The notes: generated from the sequence alone by a model not told the origin. 64,000 bases of DNA from Zygnema circumcarinatum SAG 698-1b (GCA_037447605.1 CM074804.1:7231909-7295908); one strand, 5' to 3'; shown: positions 12,261-23,592, numbered from the stretch's first letter. Translations and numbers: made by a program.

Positions 12261-15200
12261 TCAGCCGGTGTTGCGCATGTTGCTGGCAATGGCTTTGATG
12301 GTCCGCAGCAATGGCTTCTCCCAGAGATCCAATGTCTCTGGCAATGCTTGCGGATCTCTCCTTCTCCCCAAAAGGATTACCTGAAGCAGTTTTAAGACGC
12401 AGCAGGGTCAGAGATCACCTTCCGTGATTCCCAGCTCAAGCTCAGGTGCAAGTCTGAAGATTGGATGTGAGTGGTACTTAGGGCCAAGCACATGTTTGCT
12501 CGATGTTTGGAAGGCACACAGCATATGAATGACAACAGTATGTTGAAGTCCGAGCAGAATGGGCTGAGCACCTGAATATGGTTCAGTGGATCAAGGTAGT
12601 CGCGCCGTTTTTCAAACGATTGCTTCAGTGTGGTGTTATCCTCTTGGAGAGTATTCAACTGGGCGACCATGAGGATCTGCAGGCGGCGTCTCAGGCGCAC
12701 CGTAAATGGTACAAACTCAAACTCCATTTTTCAAAAGCAGGAAACCGTATAGTCAATCTCTTTTTCAAAAGGGCATCCACCCCTCAGCTGGTACACCATT
12801 TCCAAAAGGAGCTCAGGAGAGGCATACCTGTGACTTGGTCAGCTCATACTCTCTGGCAACAACGTCATATACTAAACTCTGTGTGATGCGGTTCCTGCAC
12901 TCAAGCACAACCGAGATGCATACTGCAATCGTCACCAGGAAATGCAGGCAAACAACACCGAAGCATTCCCTCAAAACTATAATTTGTCATTGTGCGCCCA
13001 AACTCCCACATATCTTCTTTCATCCACAAAACTTCTCTTACAAACAATAGCCACCGAAAGAGGAACGTCCTAACTTACTGGCAGAGGCGCGAATATTCAT
13101 GCGCGATTTCCATGGATGCTTTGAACAACGACATCTGTTGCCCTCACTCAGAGAGTCAGCACAGGAAGAGGAACAAAAGAGCTTCCACACCAACTTTTTG
13201 CCAAGTGCAGCAGCTATTCACCTGCCTTCAAACCAATCCTGACCTCCCTCTAGACGCAAGAGATGAATAGATTTAAAAGCAACCATTGAGAAAAGGAGAG
13301 TTTTTCTGGATTCCAATATTGACCTGCACATTGGAGAGAAAGGTCCGGAAGAAGGGCCAGTCGCGGTACATTCGTTGCAGCTCTTGGATACGTTCTATGC
13401 GGTTTCCAGTGTATGCAAGTATACCAGAGCCCACTCCATACCAGCCAGGTATTGTGTGACGTGACTGCAGCAGCCCTCCCACAACACAAACTGTTAAGCT
13501 TATTTCAAACATTGGATGATCTGTTGCCGAAGAGAAACGGATAAGTTTTTGCCCACCTGAGACCAGCCGAAGACCCAAGGAATGGCTCTCAAGCTCGACT
13601 TGTCACGCACACCAGCTTTGCGGCGAGCAGGTCTGCTTCCAATGTTCATCAGTCCAATTTCATTCACAACTGTTGCTTCATAGAAATAGTCGTAAAATCC
13701 CTCTGTCTCCTCCGTCAGCTCACGGTATGCTTTCTCCGCTCCTTCCAGCACCACCTTCATCACGTCAGAGTCCTGACAGCAACGCAGAAGCTGGGGTAAG
13801 CAGACTGCTGAAGTTTAAGGATAGAGACGAGCATACCCACATGATTGCGATGCTTTTTGGATGCGGCAACTAATAAAAGCTCACTCTAATCTCCACATAA
13901 ACAGCATTCAGATTGGAAGTAGAGGTTTGACCTCAAGAGATAGAATTGGTTCTACACAATTTGAAGCTTCGTTTCTGTTCCAAAAACATTTGTCAACCGG
14001 CAGCCCGCAGGTGTATAAAATGAGTCCAAGCGGGACATTACTATGGTCTACACCAAACTCTTTCTTCTTCGTTCCACAATTTCGTACTCTCCTGTTGTAG
14101 CTCTCTCACCTCTGGACGGATGTTCTGCTGCAGCTCTGTCGCCGGATGGCTCGCTTTCATGACAGCAGTTACACCGACCTGCAGCTCTCCCAACCCACCA
14201 GTATTTGGCTATTGTGGAAATAACATAGACGCTGTTACTCTCCTGTACGCTCCCTCCCACAACATAACCTGCGAACTTGACCACATAACCATAATCACGA
14301 CCAAAGAGTTACGTTGTACCCACCGTGAGCTCATATGCTGCTGTTTCACTGTTTCCATATCGATATGTGATCACCTCCCCTTGCTCTGTAAACTTGATCT
14401 GCCCATTTACTGAACCTGATGGCTGCAAAATTCCAGCAACAACTTCCGCTCGTTACTCGTAGCTACCCCATTTCTACGCCTTCCACAATCTGCAAGCTGA
14501 ATGATTGAAGTTGCCCTACCTTTAACGTCACGAACTCAAGGGCAATCAAAAGTAAGCAGTAACCTTTTACGCCTCTCTATGATGAGCTACCTCCCCCCCC
14601 CCCCCCCCNNNNNNNNNNCCCCCCCCCCCCCCCCCCCCTTACCTGGGAGAGCACACTCTCGTGAGTGGGCCCTGCTCCCCGACCGACCGTTCCCCCCCGA
14701 CCGTGGAAGATGCGGGCACGCACTCCCGCAGCACTGGTCGTGTTTTTAATGACTTCCTGCGCCTTGTAGAGGTTGAAGGCACTTGCAGTAATGCCCCCAT
14801 CCTTGCACGAGTCCGAGTAGCCGAGCATCACTTCCTGCCAGAAACTCCACTGGTAAGTATCCTCTCGCCTACTTGCATTCAAAAGCTAGAGATTAACACC
14901 CTGCCTCTGATCGTTTTAGGGCTCAGCTTCTATTGAGAAACCAAAGAGAACTACCGTTGGAGTAAAGAGTTAGTATCCAAAGTTTTGAGGACGGGTAGAG
15001 AATGCGGAGCACACCTGCATGCCTCCGGAGGCAGTTAAGATGTCTTTGTAAGTTGCACATTCCATGAGCTGCTGTAACGCTGCTGGCATGCCCTGTTCAT
15101 GACATGGCATTTTTCTCGTTTCTTAATGGGAATACTTAGCATTTATGAGTGCCCTAGCATTTACAAAATTCAGTTTTGAGGAGCAAGAATTGGTATTTAA

Positions 15201-18200
15201 ATTACTTGAGCATTTGTGATCCTCACATGCACCAGTGCGCAACCATATGCAAACTAGTACTACCTCTTCTCCATCTACACTTCTCTCCATTATCCCTGAT
15301 CCCAATAGCCACGACGAAGTTCACACTAAATAGCAGCCGACTCCGATTGCGCCAGCTACTAAAATTTATTCAGTGCTAATATAATATTTGATGTACTCCA
15401 GAATTTTGAATCAAGGTCAACAGACTATCAATCTAAGTTAAAAAGTTGAACTTGCATCGTTTTTCCCGAAATCCAGTCTTGAAGTGAAAGGAAAGCTGTA
15501 GTCAAGCCTTGGCGAGGGAAACAGAAGGTGCATTTGAATGAACGAACCTCTAAATCAGGAATGGTCTCAAAGAGAGGAGCCACTACAAGTCGTGCATACC
15601 ACTCCCCATTTTCTCGCCTTCCGACCAGACCCCGGTTGACAAGCCATCCCAGAAATAGCACCTGCATCAGCCCGGCTCAACATGAGCAGCCATCCATGGC
15701 AGTTTCAACAACAATTCACAAGAACAGCCGGTTTGAGCCGGTTTGGTTTGGTATTCCGCACGCCACGGAGAGAGATTATATTTGCCAGAATTTCATTTTG
15801 GCTGGCCAACCCTCTACGTTGTTTGCCGGGAAGGAGAGTAGCAGCGAGAAAGGGCTTACCTCAAGCACGTGGGAGGACTGACGAGTCATTGAAATGACGT
15901 ATGAAGCAATCGCTTTTTCGGATATGTTGGCCTTGATGTTGGCAACTGCATCCAAAACCTTCACTACCTGTCGGGTGCTTTCTGTCATGCGTTCCATCAG
16001 CTCCTGCAGTCAGCAAGCAGCACAGCTCATCAAACACAGTAAAAAGGAACCTCAAGGAGCCGAAAATTGCCAACAAGAAGTTAAGGGAGCATCGGTGCCT
16101 TTATTGGCATGCATATGTAAGCAAGAAAAGGCCCAGAGCGATCACAAAAGGATTTCTTTAGTTCATTCAATTCCAGAAAAAAAGGAGGCAAGAGCTAACA
16201 TTAATCGCGGGTGGAGGAGATTTCAAGTATCGTTCCAACAGTTCCATGCGGCCCATATTGTCGAGTGCATTGTAGTCGTCCTCGCAACCCAACAGACGAA
16301 GACACTCCTCCACCGCCTGCGGCAGAACGCTGCTCATTAGTCATAAGTAAGCCAGAAATACGAACCAGAATAATAGTTAACTCTTCTGCATCGCCCATTC
16401 CTTTTAGTCTGTGCCCAGTTATGCGAAGTGTAATTCTCACCGCGGTATGCACTACTGACTCTTGCCGTACATCCAGGGCACAGAGATAAAGGCCGAAAGT
16501 CTCCGCCAGTCGCAAGAGATCCTTCAGCTTAGAATCAGCCAATCGTGCATCTCCATTTTCTCGTAGAGAAGCCTACACATGCAAGAAGACAGCTCTGCAT
16601 CATACGACCAACCTCTTATCTTACGAAGGTTTATGCAGCCCATGACAAAGAAGTCAAAGTGTGAGGGATCATCATCCACTTACATCAATGAGTTTGAGAT
16701 CTGCGAGAAACTCCTCTTCTGAAGGATACGAGTCCACTTCAGGCGCAAGCCCGGGAATGTCATCCAAACTGAACTCCAAGTCAATGAGCCATGGAGCATC
16801 CTGCCTCCGACAAATCGTTCCAACTTTCTTTGGTTGAGCTCATACATTTCGGGCAAACCCCCAGTGCATGCTTCAAATGCTCGAAGCGTTTCTATGCATG
16901 ACCGGCATTCCTGAGGCTGACCTTCCACACAGAGGCTGTTCTTAAATAACTGGCCATGAAGCATATACAAAGACAGACCCATAAGCAGCCTTAAATTCCT
17001 ACAACATTTCGTGAAGGATACATAAGCTTGACATTCACAAACAACCAGCATTTTGACAGCTGCTGATTTCACTAACCTCGAGTGCAAGATTGCTGAACTT
17101 GCGGAGCAAAGCATTCACTTTACGAATGTTCTGCTCTAACCGATGCCTCATTACTCGCAGTTTCAGTCTGTAAGGTTCCTGTGCTCAGGCCACAACCCAA
17201 CTGTCATCAGCCGGAAAATCTCTATCATTGGTGGTGACAAGAGGTGCCAATAAGTCAAATTATTCTTTTACGTGGAACACCGCCTGATGTGCTTGCAGAC
17301 AAGAAACATCTTGCAGGATTTCACAAGGGAATTCATGCCAAGTTCTGATTCTTCCCCTTTTCTCTCAAGATTTGAGCTGAAAGTCCCAAGAAAAATCAAT
17401 GGACTTCTCTTTACATGTTCAAATCGAGTGAGATCGTTTCGAATCGACGGGACATTAGCCAGCCGTTCTCGATCTCCTTCTAGAGACCCAAGCAGAGCAG
17501 GGCTGACATTGCAGATTCGCAGGGAGTGGGTAAGTGCTTCCTGCCATTAGAGCGAAACAAACAAGAATTTCAAATAACTAAAAACAAGCCGAGCCGTGCT
17601 ATTGTCAAGAGCATTGTCTACCTCGCCTGCTTACTGCTTACTGCTCACCATCATCTTGGACTATGTTGCTACACACAACAGATCCTTGACCCAGGATTGT
17701 ATACCTTCTAGGTATGCCTACTTGCGTATGTAGTTTAAGCTCAATCCAACAACCATCTCGTACCTGGCAGCTTTTGCAGCGTTTGATATATTCTGCAAGA
17801 ATAAGGCGGCTTGAAAGCAAGGCGGCAACCTCCGTCGTCTCAGGAAGCACTGCTTGCTCAGCGTGTAGAAGTCATGGAACGATTCCCACATACAAATTCC
17901 ATCCATACGTGAGAGGGATCCTTTGGCTACTTTGGACTAGCCAAAGAATTACTAGAAATCTAGAAATCTAAAAGCTAGAAATCTGATAGCTGCGGCCACT
18001 GTGAACCCGAAAAACTGCAACTCACCAAAAGGGTTGCCATCTCTGTCTCCACCAATCCACGATCCGAACTTGATGAAGCTTGGGAGCTTCAGACCTGCGT
18101 TTGGGTACACATGCTGCAAGGAGAAAGCATTGCCAACTGCCAATGAGTTTCACAAACACTGTCGAACATTCGATCAATGGGAGGCTCAGAAGCTCTGTTC

Positions 18201-21200
18201 TTCCTTAAGGTTCAATCTTTTCTGCTTTTCCTTTTCTCTGATTAGTAACATCCACTACCACTCTCGCTAAAACTTAAAGAGAACTCACTCCAAGCGAGTT
18301 TTCAGCATAACGGTAGGTGGTGCAGACTGCGTCAAATAGGGAGAGTCGGAAATAATCGAGGCCTGTTAGGACCTCTTCCAGTACGGAAGGTTTGCGTGAT
18401 CGCATTTCATCTGTCCGCCAGAGGACCTCAATCTGCATCACCCATACTTCACATCAGCAGTCTGTACAGCCCCAAATATGAGCAACTTGAATATAACTTG
18501 TAACCAGGCGTAAAACTATTATGATGAGATAGTCAAAGCACTTCATCACAAATTCAATAGGGTTTCAACGACGAGTGGAAAATTTCAAGTGCGTGAAGTC
18601 GCTAACCTCTGCTTCAACTTCTTCGTTGAGCTGTGAGAGCTGTGCAGGGCTTAAACGTGGATCCTGCATTGCAACATCATCACCACCTTTGAGAAAGCTA
18701 AATCCTCCACATGCGGTTTGGCACATAGCCTGCCATCACGTTAGCTATACAGTCAGTGTATCGTATGGTGCCAATGCAAATGCATAATACTAATGAGGTT
18801 ATACTGTTGTAGGGTTGTGTGAAATCACGTTCACGACAATTACAGTAGGACAAGGGCTATGTACGCCGTGTACAAAATGCGTTTTAGTTTGTGCCAGAGT
18901 GGCGATATAGCTTAAGAGATGAGTCCCACATAATGGCGTCGGTGAAACAAGATATCGATTAAGAGGTTGTTCAAGTTCGAGGATATAAGTCCCACAGGGA
19001 AGACTCACTCGACAAGATCATGGCGATCCAAAAGATTTCAGACTTCTTCTCGCTACAAACAAAGATTGTCTATTAAACTCGAAAGGCTTTTACAGTAAAA
19101 CACCTCTAAAGTTGTTTCCTTCGGACCAGCCCCTCATGATAACTCAAAGAGGATAAAACTTGGCATGGCATGGCATGGCATGGGCATGCATGCATGTTAC
19201 TGTAGGGTTGGATTCCTTCAGTCATATAGTATTGCAACAAGATAGGACAGCAGTTCAATGTTAAAGTTAATACAGCGGAAGGGGGAAGTTGTGCCTAGGA
19301 GCAGAGTCCTTCTATATCGTATGTACAACCTAGAAGCGGCCTTCCCCTGCATAAAGTGCCTACCTCGCGAGCTGTGCAAAGGCCAAAAATTCGATGCAAG
19401 CACTTGAGCACCTCCCGCCTTCGCGCCTCGGTGGGGTGTGCAGTAAACACTGGATTGTACTGCAGACCAGAAAGAAAGACCACTTACTAAATGCAGAGCG
19501 GAAGGGGCCCTTAAATCCAAATACCGCATCTGGTTGTCAGCATTCGAAATGGGCAAAAGAAGGATAAGCTTAAACCAATCAAGCAAATGGTTTGAGTCGG
19601 TTCAAGCGCAAACTTCGAGGAAAATCATGGCTAGAGATGCGCACCTCAATCTTATTTAACAGCTGTTGGAGCTCCTTTGGGCCCACATCTGCTTTGCGGA
19701 ACTGTCGGAATGTGTGGTCGAATGAAGCATACCAGAGCGGTGTGGCGCTGCGGGAGACCCATACCTCCTCTCTTCGCTTGCGATGAGCATGTGCTTCATC
19801 TACTATGTTGAGAAGAGACGAGTACAAGTAGTAGAGCCGGGTTACTCCCGTAACCTGCACCCAGTCAAGTTGGAATCGAGGTCCTCGTCAGAACTTCTCC
19901 TCACACGACAGTGCCCGCCATTTGATGTCTGAACCGTTTTGAGGAAAGTACATTTGAAAAGCTACTCTATGAAAGCTATGGTTTATGCTTCTGTCCTCAC
20001 AGTGGCAGCATCCATTTTGTCGATGTAGCGCAGCAATTCAGCTCGCTTGCGTGGGTCTTCTTGGTATCTGAGTAATTTGAAGCCCTTCTGCAGGAACTTG
20101 CCCTGCGAAAGATCAAGACGACACCCGTCCGGTCAGTAACAATCACCTCGAGTGAACTCGTCACTCTTAAGAACGTAGCAAATTCGACTAATGGTTGCAA
20201 GAAAAGCAGGAGTAGCATATGGGGCCAGTTACCCAACAAGCAAACCGGTAAGAATTTCCATGACGACACGGAGAACAGACTAAGGAATGGGCCATAAAAG
20301 GGTCACTCACAGCTTCCAAAATGCCAATGTCGCCGTAAGAGGCGACAACCTTCTCCAAGCACGCTGAAAGGAAAGCTTCCTGAAGCGATGATTGGTTCAC
20401 ATACAAAGACCAAGTGGAATCAGACATAGCCTTCAAGATCACAACGAAAAGGCCCACGACAGAGGGGCTCTACACTCCATGAACATGCAGCACTAATAGC
20501 ATCTGTTCAAGCTTCAAGTTGGCCCAATGCATCCTATTCATTGCCATCAAGAATGCAGTTTAAAAGTGGCACATGCTGCTTTTCTATTTGCTGTCAAAAC
20601 GCGCTGGAGTGGTACGTAAACTCTAAGAGTCCGTAGGCAGGCGGCCGATAGGGTGCGCCGTAAAATAAGCGAAAGGAGGTCCTACAGAACTGGATTGGGG
20701 ATGGCTGAGCTTTACTCGTCGGCGTAACATAATAACTCCTAAGTCCTTAATAGGCTCAACTGAAGGTAGGGTTTCCCTTGCCTTGCTGACCACTTCAAAG
20801 GACACAAATTGTGATAAATTCCTAAATATGATAGCAGAAGTAAACAACCTCTGGACGATAAGAATATAAGAGCGCTTCATCAGGGCATCGTAACATGTCA
20901 ACAAGGTCGTGTGCAGTCTAAAGTGATCGAAGAAGTCCAGAAGTCTACCATTACACTTAAAATGGCGATAGGCATTGCCATTAATGCAATGGCAAATGCC
21001 AACAAACCCAACTCGACTAAATGAAGCAGCAGATAAGTCGCACACATTCGTCTAGTTAACACGTAAACTGAACATATTAAAAACTAGTCCTGATTAAGGT
21101 GACTCATTTGACTTAAATGTATCCATGTATAAAGACTTTGAAATTTAGGTTATATTGAAAAAACTGATTGAATTCACCTTGCATCTCTATAATCGGTAAT

Positions 21201-23592
21201 CGTATACTGGATACAGAACGCTAAGGAGATAATTCGAAGATAGATTGCGCAATTCAACTCAGTGTGAACCCAATTGATCAAAGCTTCGGGACTCCAATGG
21301 AGGCGCCATAGAAGACGACTGCGTATTCCCAAGATGTGAAGATGCTAAGTTCAGTATTTGAGCAAAGAAGATACCTCCTCTTATATCAATCTAGTGCATT
21401 TGCTTGCTAGTATTTTTAATTTAGTTTTGCCCCTTCTGACATTGTTTGAAGAGCTGTTATTGCGTATTTACGCTGCTTTTATGATGGCTTGCCATGCTGG
21501 ATTAGTCAGTGGCTTGCCTATCTACCATACGGGAAGATAGCCTTCTGGCTAGCACACCACGGTTTAAAAAAAAAAAATGGTGAATTATCTACCCCAATGC
21601 AGCCAATACGGCTACGAGGTGAAGTAGCCAAATTCGTTGGTAGTGTTGTAACGCAAAGCGGCAGTCAGGAAAGAAATTGGCTTTGATCTTGCTTCCTTTT
21701 TAAGCGTAGTTAGCCATCACTCATTCTCTCCCTCCTTGGAAAGTGCATCATGCTCTGATAACCTAGTGAGGCATGCCTAATGCTGGCGGTATATGTATAT
21801 GTATATGTATATTCCTTGTCCACGAACGTCAAACGCTGACTTGACAGCTAGGCTGAACCGCATTAAGCTACCGCGTTAATGGTTATTTTTGAAGTGTTCA
21901 AAAGCTGGAGCTTGCTAACCTGCTCTGCCAATTGAGGATCCTCCTTTGACATTTGGATGCGCTTTCTCTGAGCGAGCTTTTTGAGAATGGCTGTTTGCAT
22001 TTCCTTCGAGCGCTCCATCGAGACTGCTCCCTGCGTGTCCGCATCGAGAACGACAAAGATATCCAGGACACGTTGCTGCTGTGTCATGATACGCGCCTCC
22101 TGTACACTGCTCACCAAAAAGACGAGTTTTCGTCATATAAAAGTTTGCTATGCCTAAGAGACAGTAATCCTCACAACGGAAAAAGAACAATGAACGGGGT
22201 TTACCTCTTCATTCCCTTAACAGAAGTACAAGGCAAGTCCTCAGCACTCGTAACATAGGACATCATGTCGGAAACAGTCAAAATTAAAACGCAAGCACGG
22301 GCTGTCTGTTGCAGAAAATCTATACAACACATCATTTGATGACACTTTAATAAATGCCAGAATACAATTTTAACGTTAGGCCAACTATGACATAAAGTTA
22401 TCCTGGGGCATCGGAGTTGTAAACTACTTCCTCCATAAACAATTCATAAATAGCCTGTAACACAATTCAGAAGTTACCTCCGTATGCCCACTTGCTTGAA
22501 ATAGAGATGGCAAAAGCAAAATTACGTTGACTTCATCAAAAGTTACTGCGAAAATAATTCTCTTGCTGCTTAGCGAGGGATGATTAGACATGCCTGAGAT
22601 TAAAGCTGCTAAAGACAGTTGTAACGTCCACCAGCAGGTCTTCCTGATGCACTCCCTGCAACTCCACTACCGTGGCTCCAGGACTGCTCTCATTGTCAAC
22701 TCGAACTGAAAAGTCCAATTCTACATCCGAAAGCGATGATGCGCCATTCCCGTTTGAGCCGTTTGCTGCGATTCCCAGAGCTGGCGCAGAGCCATCCAGG
22801 GAAGAAGCAGCTGGTTCCACCGAGCCACCCACATTGGCGGTGCACTCTGTTGCTCTGACTTTCCGCGAGCTGAGATCTCCTTGAAGCCCGTTAAAAAACA
22901 ATTGCTGTCAGTAATACAGTCCCACCTTTGAAAGAGCTCAGAAGTTATAGGAAATAAGGAAAAAATGGGCGTACATCACCTGTGCTATCACACCGTAACT
23001 GTAAAGGACGCGAAAAAGGAGGAAAAACAGAAATACAGGAAAATGCAATCCGAATTTAGGAGGAAAACAAAAACAGGTGGTAAATTAGACTCTTATATGA
23101 AGCTCATTTATGAATTCGATCCACGAAAAGTCATCACCTGGAAGCTCCCGGCAATGAACTGAGTCCATGATTGTGCACTTTCAGAGGTTCTCCAAAGAGC
23201 CAAGTGCTTCCAGTCGGCTTGATCTGCTGTCCCCAAGCAGGAGAGCAAGATTCAGGCAGCAAAAACACTTCAGCTGCAGCGTTTGCGAGACGTTTGCTTT
23301 CCTGGCCTCGCAAACGTTTGTCGGTTGCAGAAAGTGTGCCTCACCTGCTTAGGCGAAAGATGGCTGGAAATATCTGATCCAGATGAAAAGAAGCACCTGC
23401 AATGCAGAGAACAACAACATTCCGCAATGCATTTCCAATGTCATTTCACGGATACGATTTGCCCATTATGGCATGCAAAAGGAAAGAGAGGCAGACGCGA
23501 ATCTATTCGCTACTGGAAAAAAAAAGAACAATCGAGCTGCACAGTCCGCACCCCGGCAGAGTGAGCGTCCTGCACGCCATCCTGGCCGCCAT
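12261..23592 (-). CDS. PPC: Phosphoenolpyruvate carboxylase with N-terminal transit peptide and ACT domain; about 30 exons
   Basis: All PEPC motifs occur in order: [11 protein letters not shown] (exon 19459-19364), [116 protein letters not shown] and C-terminal MRNTG* (stop 12263-12261). 5' exons 23592-23552, 23396-23345, 23223-23138, 22869-22594, 22106-21920, 20379-20311 and 20102-20001 splice in phase. The first three of these are less certain. Confidence 0.95.
14593..14637. other. Poly-C tract with assembly gap (N) inside a PEPC intron
   Basis: C-run interrupted by n characters, directly after the donor of the GRGG exon. Confidence 0.95.

Follow-up and report, generated by a model that had tools for sequence, protein, structure and literature searches.

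Phosphoenolpyruvate carboxylase (PEPC) supplies carbon skeletons for nitrogen assimilation, and control of the plant enzymes is attributed to phosphorylation, ubiquitination and metabolite effectors that act on the core. In plant PEPC, phosphorylation at the N-terminus tunes malate sensitivity. [quoted passage not shown] Here, we analyzed a 64,000-nucleotide (nt) stretch of the genome of Zygnema circumcarinatum SAG 698-1b (GCA_037447605.1 CM074804.1:7231909-7295908; hereafter, the window), intron-rich eukaryotic DNA whose minus strand carries a PEPC gene. This gene encodes a single polypeptide of ~1100 residues, made up of a presequence, one ACT-like domain, a basic linker and a PEPC core that looks intact from its sequence. 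A first-pass annotation, made by reading the DNA alone, had proposed that two exons encode an ACT domain of the GlnD/ACR type and splice in frame into the first PEPC helix.

The two exons, A and B (Table 1), together code for a single ACT-like domain, whose VRVDN stretch begins at position 22706. Exon A alone matched the Pfam family ACT_ACR9_3rd at 17 bits (E 0.005); exon B alone had no Pfam match, and the homologous exons of relatives, searched singly, behaved alike. Once A and B were spliced, the resulting 89-residue domain scored 32.0 bits on ACT_ACR9_3rd (PF24931), where the match spanned profile positions 1-82 of 98 and the cut-off is 27, and 30.7 bits on bHLH-TF_ACT-like_plant (PF22754; cut-off 27.6). 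This rise argues that exon B contributes the second half of the domain in register. The counterpart in a second organism, species X (see below), reached 28.2 bits in the Pfam profile search, and the RNA-derived protein P0026 from the same organism 25.6-26.1 bits, slightly below the cut-off. In NCBIfam, the window domain matched eight GlnD models, always over their final ~85 positions, i.e. the C-terminal ACT domain, with E-values from 2e-13 to 3e-4. The best of these matches (E 2e-13, 49 bits) covered residues 3-88 of the spliced domain, and the RNA-derived ortholog matched at E 8e-12. Pairwise BLASTP gave 31% identity over 71 residues to ACT2 of Escherichia coli GlnD. The homology is that of a domain and not of a full-length GlnD, as 49 bits compare with model cut-offs of 519-1567.

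The same assignment emerged at the level of the fold. An AlphaFold model of the ortholog (P0026:14-122), computed from aligned exon pieces of seven organisms, had a mean pLDDT of 78.7 and a pTM of 0.71 and showed the topology ββαββα (strands at 9-14 and 22-28, helix 34-44, strands 47-57 and 60-69, helix 78-101). In GlnD, ACR and plant bHLH proteins, this order is known as the ACT-like fold (PMC10175843), so the GlnD/ACR-type label of the first-pass annotation is correct. Foldseek placed crystal structures of the maize R and GL3 ACT-like domains on top (PDB 9c7o and 9c7n; probability 1.0), followed by ACT domains from SerA, homoserine dehydrogenase and a large glutamate dehydrogenase; an aspartokinase ACT domain was also among the structural matches. 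VIA-align returned Z-scores of 8.2 to GL3 and 7.9 to R over 79 of 79 residues, and of 7-9 to other ACT domains. The domain encoded by exons A and B is thus a GlnD/ACR-type ACT-like domain, and the suggested profile scan for ACT together with PEPcase found both, the ACT-like families above cut-off after splicing and PEPcase on single exons. A PDB sequence search with the spliced domain yielded only chance matches to calmodulin (E 0.15). The EF-hand appearance of one stretch of exon B (21975-22106) was rejected on account of unfit loop positions and a pattern that is not conserved in relatives. In metagenome data, an exon B fragment (P0031; Joint Genome Institute (JGI), 27 contigs) bears the pipeline name 'UTP:GlnB (protein PII) uridylyltransferase', so automatic annotation already takes exon B as GlnD-like, minus its PEPC context.

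The point of fusion lies within exon B. In BLASTP comparisons of the assembled protein with bacterial PEPCs, the alignment sets in at the D of DPQLAEQ, the stretch of seven residues that closes this exon. DPQLAEQ aligns with bacterial DKELRARV, six residues past the bacterial start codon (bacterial N-terminus MIDQPRDKELRARVRLLG...). As PEPC homology already begins inside exon B, the exon itself links the ACT-like and PEPC parts, and the ACT-like domain is part of the PEPC gene rather than a separate gene. From exon B, a phase-0 GT-AG junction leads in frame into exon C, as had been proposed, and this junction is conserved in relatives.

Transcripts of species X provide further support. RNA contig L001 aligns with genomic scaffold L002 in six blocks from which five introns have been removed; it carries an ATG, three short 5′ exons, exon A, a retained A/B intron and exon B, with exons C and D spliced on. 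In a second RNA contig, L098, which encodes P0026, the A/B intron is excised exactly at the predicted junction (...SEMGI-S-VESARLQ...), and the message runs on through exons C to F with the B/C intron as the only one retained. Between them, L001 and L098 cover all junctions, starting at the initiation codon and reaching into the PEPC core. The retained introns flank exon B, namely A/B in L001 (633-827) and in P0022 and B/C in L098 (~495-608), all others being removed; this could reflect incomplete processing or regulated retention. As to the identity of species X, its sequences occur in metagenomes of Sphagnum teres tissue (PMC9584203), where the contigs reach 230 kb, and on other JGI metagenome contigs (Ga0116227 and Ga0116228) that presumably stem from peat-moss samples. 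Its versions differ by 2-4% between samples. Given this provenance and variation, species X is probably the moss host itself, a Sphagnum.

The layout is shared more widely. The search for the same architecture in other genomes, recommended at the outset, showed exon B and then PEPC exons, in one orientation, on the contigs behind its matches; with the window included, at least eight organisms have this order, and in six of these exon A also lies upstream. With a profile search, the number of distinct exon B sequences rose to at least 16. Position and phase of the A/B intron are identical in all seven organisms in which the junction is visible, its donor being GC in the window, L007, L010 and L096 and GT in L002, L006 and L097. 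Across organisms, nonsynonymous divergence of exons A and B (pN 0.16-0.40) is low against a saturated synonymous divergence (pS 0.70-0.89), which marks them as constrained coding sequence under purifying selection and, like the rise in Pfam score on splicing, speaks against a chance resemblance. Queried with exon B, a set of 1.84 billion representatives yielded seven short open reading frame fragments, all ending in DPxLxEQ followed by a valine derived from the GT donor. Annotated full-length homologs were not among the results of this search, which retrieved fragments only; their absence is not thereby established, as the queries were all short exons and several known family members sit at the E-value limit. 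A word-index search with the open frame of exon A had no match, and a metagenome scan with a four-sequence alignment recovered species X only. Mapping every exon fragment onto a bacterial PEPC, with the aim of reaching full-length proteins, produced a scrambled alignment that was discarded. The conserved layout, the position of the fusion point and the spliced RNA of species X all agree with the initial view that the ACT exons are not a separate gene.

Downstream of the junction, the protein is a PEPC throughout. PF00311 (PEPcase) was detected on single exons with E-values of 2.8e-25 and 1.8e-30, and ~945 residues can be aligned with bacterial PEPCs over their whole length. Colinearity with the gene of species X extends through ...ASNMRNTG, with 64% identity over the full length. 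We checked 15 positions against E. coli Ppc: the 12 named catalytic and aspartate-site residues are conserved (equivalents of H138, R396, E506, D543, H579, R581, R587, R699, R713, K773, R832 and N881), and K620 is replaced by Arg. The core thus looks intact by sequence, including the residues of the aspartate/malate inhibitor site.

Which class of PEPC this core belongs to is less readily stated. Bacterial-type plant PEPC (BTPC) has a disordered insert of ~10 kDa. Compared with the closest bacterial PEPC, the sole large extra in the window protein is its N-terminal ~145 residues, and the largest internal insert measures 11 residues, so a BTPC-type insert appears to be absent. The C-terminus reads RNTG and not the plant-type QNTG. 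A motif search of the window protein for the plant-type sequence [E/D][R/K]xxSIDAQ was negative, in agreement with the first-pass annotation, which had seen no SIDAQ-like motif. An (R/K)NTG end without the phosphorylation motif is the feature by which BTPCs are recognized (PMC4196954), and the window protein has this combination. One conserved PEPC exon is equally distant from the plant and E. coli enzymes. When one genome per bacterial species was scanned, the nearest cores came from Thiotrichales, Chromatiales, Halothiobacillus and Thiobacillaceae, identity being 42-47% over ~935 residues to PEPCs of sulfur-oxidizing Gamma- and Betaproteobacteria and 31% to E. coli Ppc. None of the bacterial PEPC relatives has an N-terminal ACT domain, and a PDB search with two N-terminal PEPC exons gave no match. 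In a quick maximum-likelihood tree, the window and species X branch together within a group of sulfur-oxidizer PEPCs that has full support, with the E. coli, cyanobacterial and acidobacterial enzymes outside it; since the sequence set was retrieved with a motif and holds no plant PEPCs, the tree does not tell a third class from a divergent BTPC.

The coding assembly from exon A onward comprises 27 exons and 1092 stop-free residues. It is approximate, with the core junctions of exons 12/13, 15/16 and 21/22 uncertain. The first-pass coordinates and translations held for exons A and B, for the DPQLAEQ end with its GT donor and for the start of exon C at 20379; the end of exon C had to be moved by one nucleotide, from 20310 to 20311. 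The frame of exon A is open from the acceptor at 22870/22869 down to 22594 and contains no in-frame ATG, so at least one further exon is required upstream. A candidate for it (Table 1) matches the RNA-backed exon 1 of species X (L001 45-85) in phase and in its 41-nt coding length, and its phase is compatible with the exon A acceptor; an alternative upstream ATG lies at 23166.

Table 1. Exons and introns of the PEPC gene, in window coordinates.
Feature	Position	Strand	Description
Candidate coding exon 1	23592-23552	-	Predicted; ATG at 23592, 41 coding nt, ends in phase 2, donor GG/GTGCGG
Exon A	22869-22594	-	Ser/Ala/Gly-rich presequence of ~52 residues, then β1, β2 and α1; domain part 22712-22594
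A/B intron	22593-22107	-	GC-AG type, AG/GCATGT ... GAGCAG/T; splits a Ser codon within the ACT-like domain
Exon B, first part	22106-21975	-	β3, β4 and α2, ending ...ILKKL
Exon B, last part	21974-21920	-	Basic linker of ~12 residues, then DPQLAEQ (21940-21920), the start of PEPC helix 1
B/C intron	21919-20380	-	GT-AG, phase 0, 1540 nt; CAG acceptor
Exon C	20379-20311	-	Remainder of PEPC helix 1
Rest of PEPC core	20102-12261	-	~24 exons, ending ...ASNMRNTG and TGA (stop 12263-12261)

Several features of the introns deserve mention. The B/C intron, which measures 85-240 nt in relatives and is thus much longer in the window, contains a (GTATAT)4 microsatellite (21789-21812). In frame with exon C, and 16 codons upstream of it, this intron also has an ATG (20427). 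An assembly gap of 10 Ns (14609-14618) sits amid a long poly-C run (poly-G on the gene strand), ~25 nt past the donor of exon 19; it is intronic and touches no coding sequence. The two genes also differ in their introns: that of species X is split between ...RREE and VWASR..., where the window has no intron (window 19645-19854; L002 10904-11304), and the window has an intron between ...SHVLE and VLFLGW... that species X lacks (window 15548-16003; L002 14312-14569).

Ahead of the ACT-like domain, the region at 22594-23592 (minus strand) is rich in Ser, Ala and Gly, and the candidate N-terminus carries basic residues (five basic and one acidic among the first 30), as organellar presequences do. 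In species X, the N-terminus supported by RNA is rich in Ser and Thr, about 170 presequence-like residues coming from the three 5′ exons and the start of exon A. A similarity search of the species X presequence against the window returned noise only. By its composition, the presequence hints that the enzyme may reside close to GS/GOGAT in an organelle, probably the plastid.

What might an ACT-like domain do at this position? ACT and ACT-like domains act in pairs, and PEPC is a tetramer whose N-terminal region governs sensitivity to feedback inhibitors. GlnD ACT domains have been described as small-molecule sensors and Chlamydomonas ACT-like domains homodimerize (PMC10175843), while PEPCs of green algae have been reported to be activated by glutamine (PMC7046716). 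Taken together, these properties favor an added allosteric module that would pair between subunits and respond to a metabolite reporting nitrogen status, a proposal to which we assign an even chance. The fused domains would pair between PEPC subunits, and a small nitrogen-status metabolite might then bind the conserved loop between β2 and α1 and shift either activity or inhibitor sensitivity. By analogy with GlnD, glutamine would be the leading candidate ligand. As the aspartate/malate site of the core is kept, the domain would add a second input without replacing the first. An amino-acid sensor that ties anaplerosis to nitrogen status, as the first-pass annotation had envisaged, is therefore a plausible function by analogy.

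Several observations weigh against such a sensor enzyme in this alga. Searches with exon B and with exon A found no RNA of the window organism that contains these exons. Each of the RNA contigs of species X retains one intron, and no single fully spliced message was seen. The predicted structure is that of the ortholog and not of the window's own protein. The DRPGLL-type motif of the β2-α1 loop, a putative ligand site, is not kept, its Gly included: the window reads HQEDLL. Finally, the closest solved structures, R and GL3, are dimerization modules without a known ligand.

The last two points lead to the alternative that survives best, in which the domain binds no ligand and serves as an oligomerization or docking module that stabilizes PEPC dimers or tetramers or recruits a partner such as an ACR protein or another PEPC subunit, much as in bHLH proteins. 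We regard this as possible, though appreciably less probable than an allosteric module. It would fit the maize R and GL3 domains being the best structural matches, the presence of bHLH-TF_ACT-like_plant as the second Pfam family above cut-off and the missing DRPGLL motif, all the more since most bHLH subfamilies also lack DRPGLL and act via dimerization (PMC10175843). In sequence, however, the domain is closer to GlnD ACT2 (E 2e-13) than to any bHLH model. The loop is also far from degenerate: most relatives read DQENLL, others DQDNLL or DQEKLL, so that D and LL are kept and R, P and G replaced, and such strong conservation suggests a functional site. In GlnD itself, ACT1 lacks the glycine too; the ACT2 loop of E. 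coli GlnD reads DQPGLL.

It is improbable that the ACT exons are absent, always or at times, from the PEPC message of this alga, either because an ACT-less enzyme starts at the ATG at 20427 or because A and B form a separate short gene. This would find some support in the in-frame position of that ATG within a 1.5-kb intron that is far longer than in relatives, in the reading frame staying open for 18 codons beyond the exon B donor (read-through after 21920) and in the searches with exons A and B, which found no RNA of this organism. Yet PEPC helix 1 begins within exon B, splice sites and phases are intact and conserved, and the ATG is absent from species X when the intron context is compared by eye. 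Moreover, exons A and B are under purifying selection, and the RNA of species X joins them to PEPC. Less likely still is a decaying, non-functional gene copy with the ACT-like region as a relic: the intronic N run at 14609-14618, the three core junctions not placed with confidence and the deviation of HQEDLL from the family's DQENLL could be read this way, but the 1092-codon assembly is free of stops and frameshifts, keeps all named catalytic residues and is 64% identical to species X.

Returning to the allosteric reading, its implications reach beyond this gene. The first-pass annotation knew of no description of such a protein, and within the literature we searched no paper combines PEPC and an ACT domain in one protein. 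Given that the structural survey confines ACT-like domains to three contexts, PEPC would be a fourth. Tentatively, streptophyte algae and at least one moss lineage might harbor a third class of PEPC, assembled from a core of sulfur-oxidizing Gammaproteobacteria, an ACT-like domain of the host's GlnD/ACR type and an organellar presequence, a one-protein integrator of carbon and nitrogen in which glutamine, or some other metabolite that reports nitrogen status, would bind to the enzyme and directly gate anaplerotic CO2 fixation in the plastid; this full scenario is one we consider possible rather than probable. Glutamine activation of algal PEPCs has been reported for decades, and we know of no identified sensor for it. 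If the proposal is true, a GlnD-type sensor on PEPC would tie anaplerotic carbon fixation to nitrogen status through a molecular link open to direct test, and a class of PEPC beyond the plant-type/bacterial-type split would exist in the lineage from which land plants arose. The domain could also be reused as a portable regulatory module in the engineering of carbon fixation.

Among known systems, GlnD shares with the window protein the C-terminal ACT homology, with E. coli ACT2 matching at 31% and in register over strand, loop, helix and two strands. It differs in its nucleotidyltransferase and HD domains, its two ACT domains with a DQPGLL/DRPGLL loop and its PII-modifying output, whereas the window protein has a single ACT-like domain, neither nucleotidyltransferase nor HD domain, and PEPC as its output. 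ACR proteins and plant bHLH proteins (maize R, GL3) share the best Pfam families, the ββαββα topology and the structural matches; in contrast to them, the domain here is single and stands at the N-terminus of a metabolic enzyme. BTPCs such as AtPPC4 and RcPPC4 have the same RNTG end, lack the N-terminal Ser phosphorylation motif and are more bacterial-like than plant-type, yet they have no ACT domain and carry the ~10-kDa insert apparently missing from the window PEPC. The PEPCs of sulfur oxidizers (Chromatiales, Thiotrichales, Thiobacillaceae) are the closest full-length sequences found and start six residues ahead of the junction point, but they have no ACT domain, and the eukaryotic gene is divided into ~27 exons. 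Rice Osppc4 is a plastid PEPC linked to ammonium assimilation; it differs in being a plant-type PEPC without an ACT domain. The logic of the fusion is that of SerA and aspartokinase, in which an ACT module is likewise joined to a branch-point enzyme, although theirs have the topology βαββαβ and operate in amino-acid biosynthesis.

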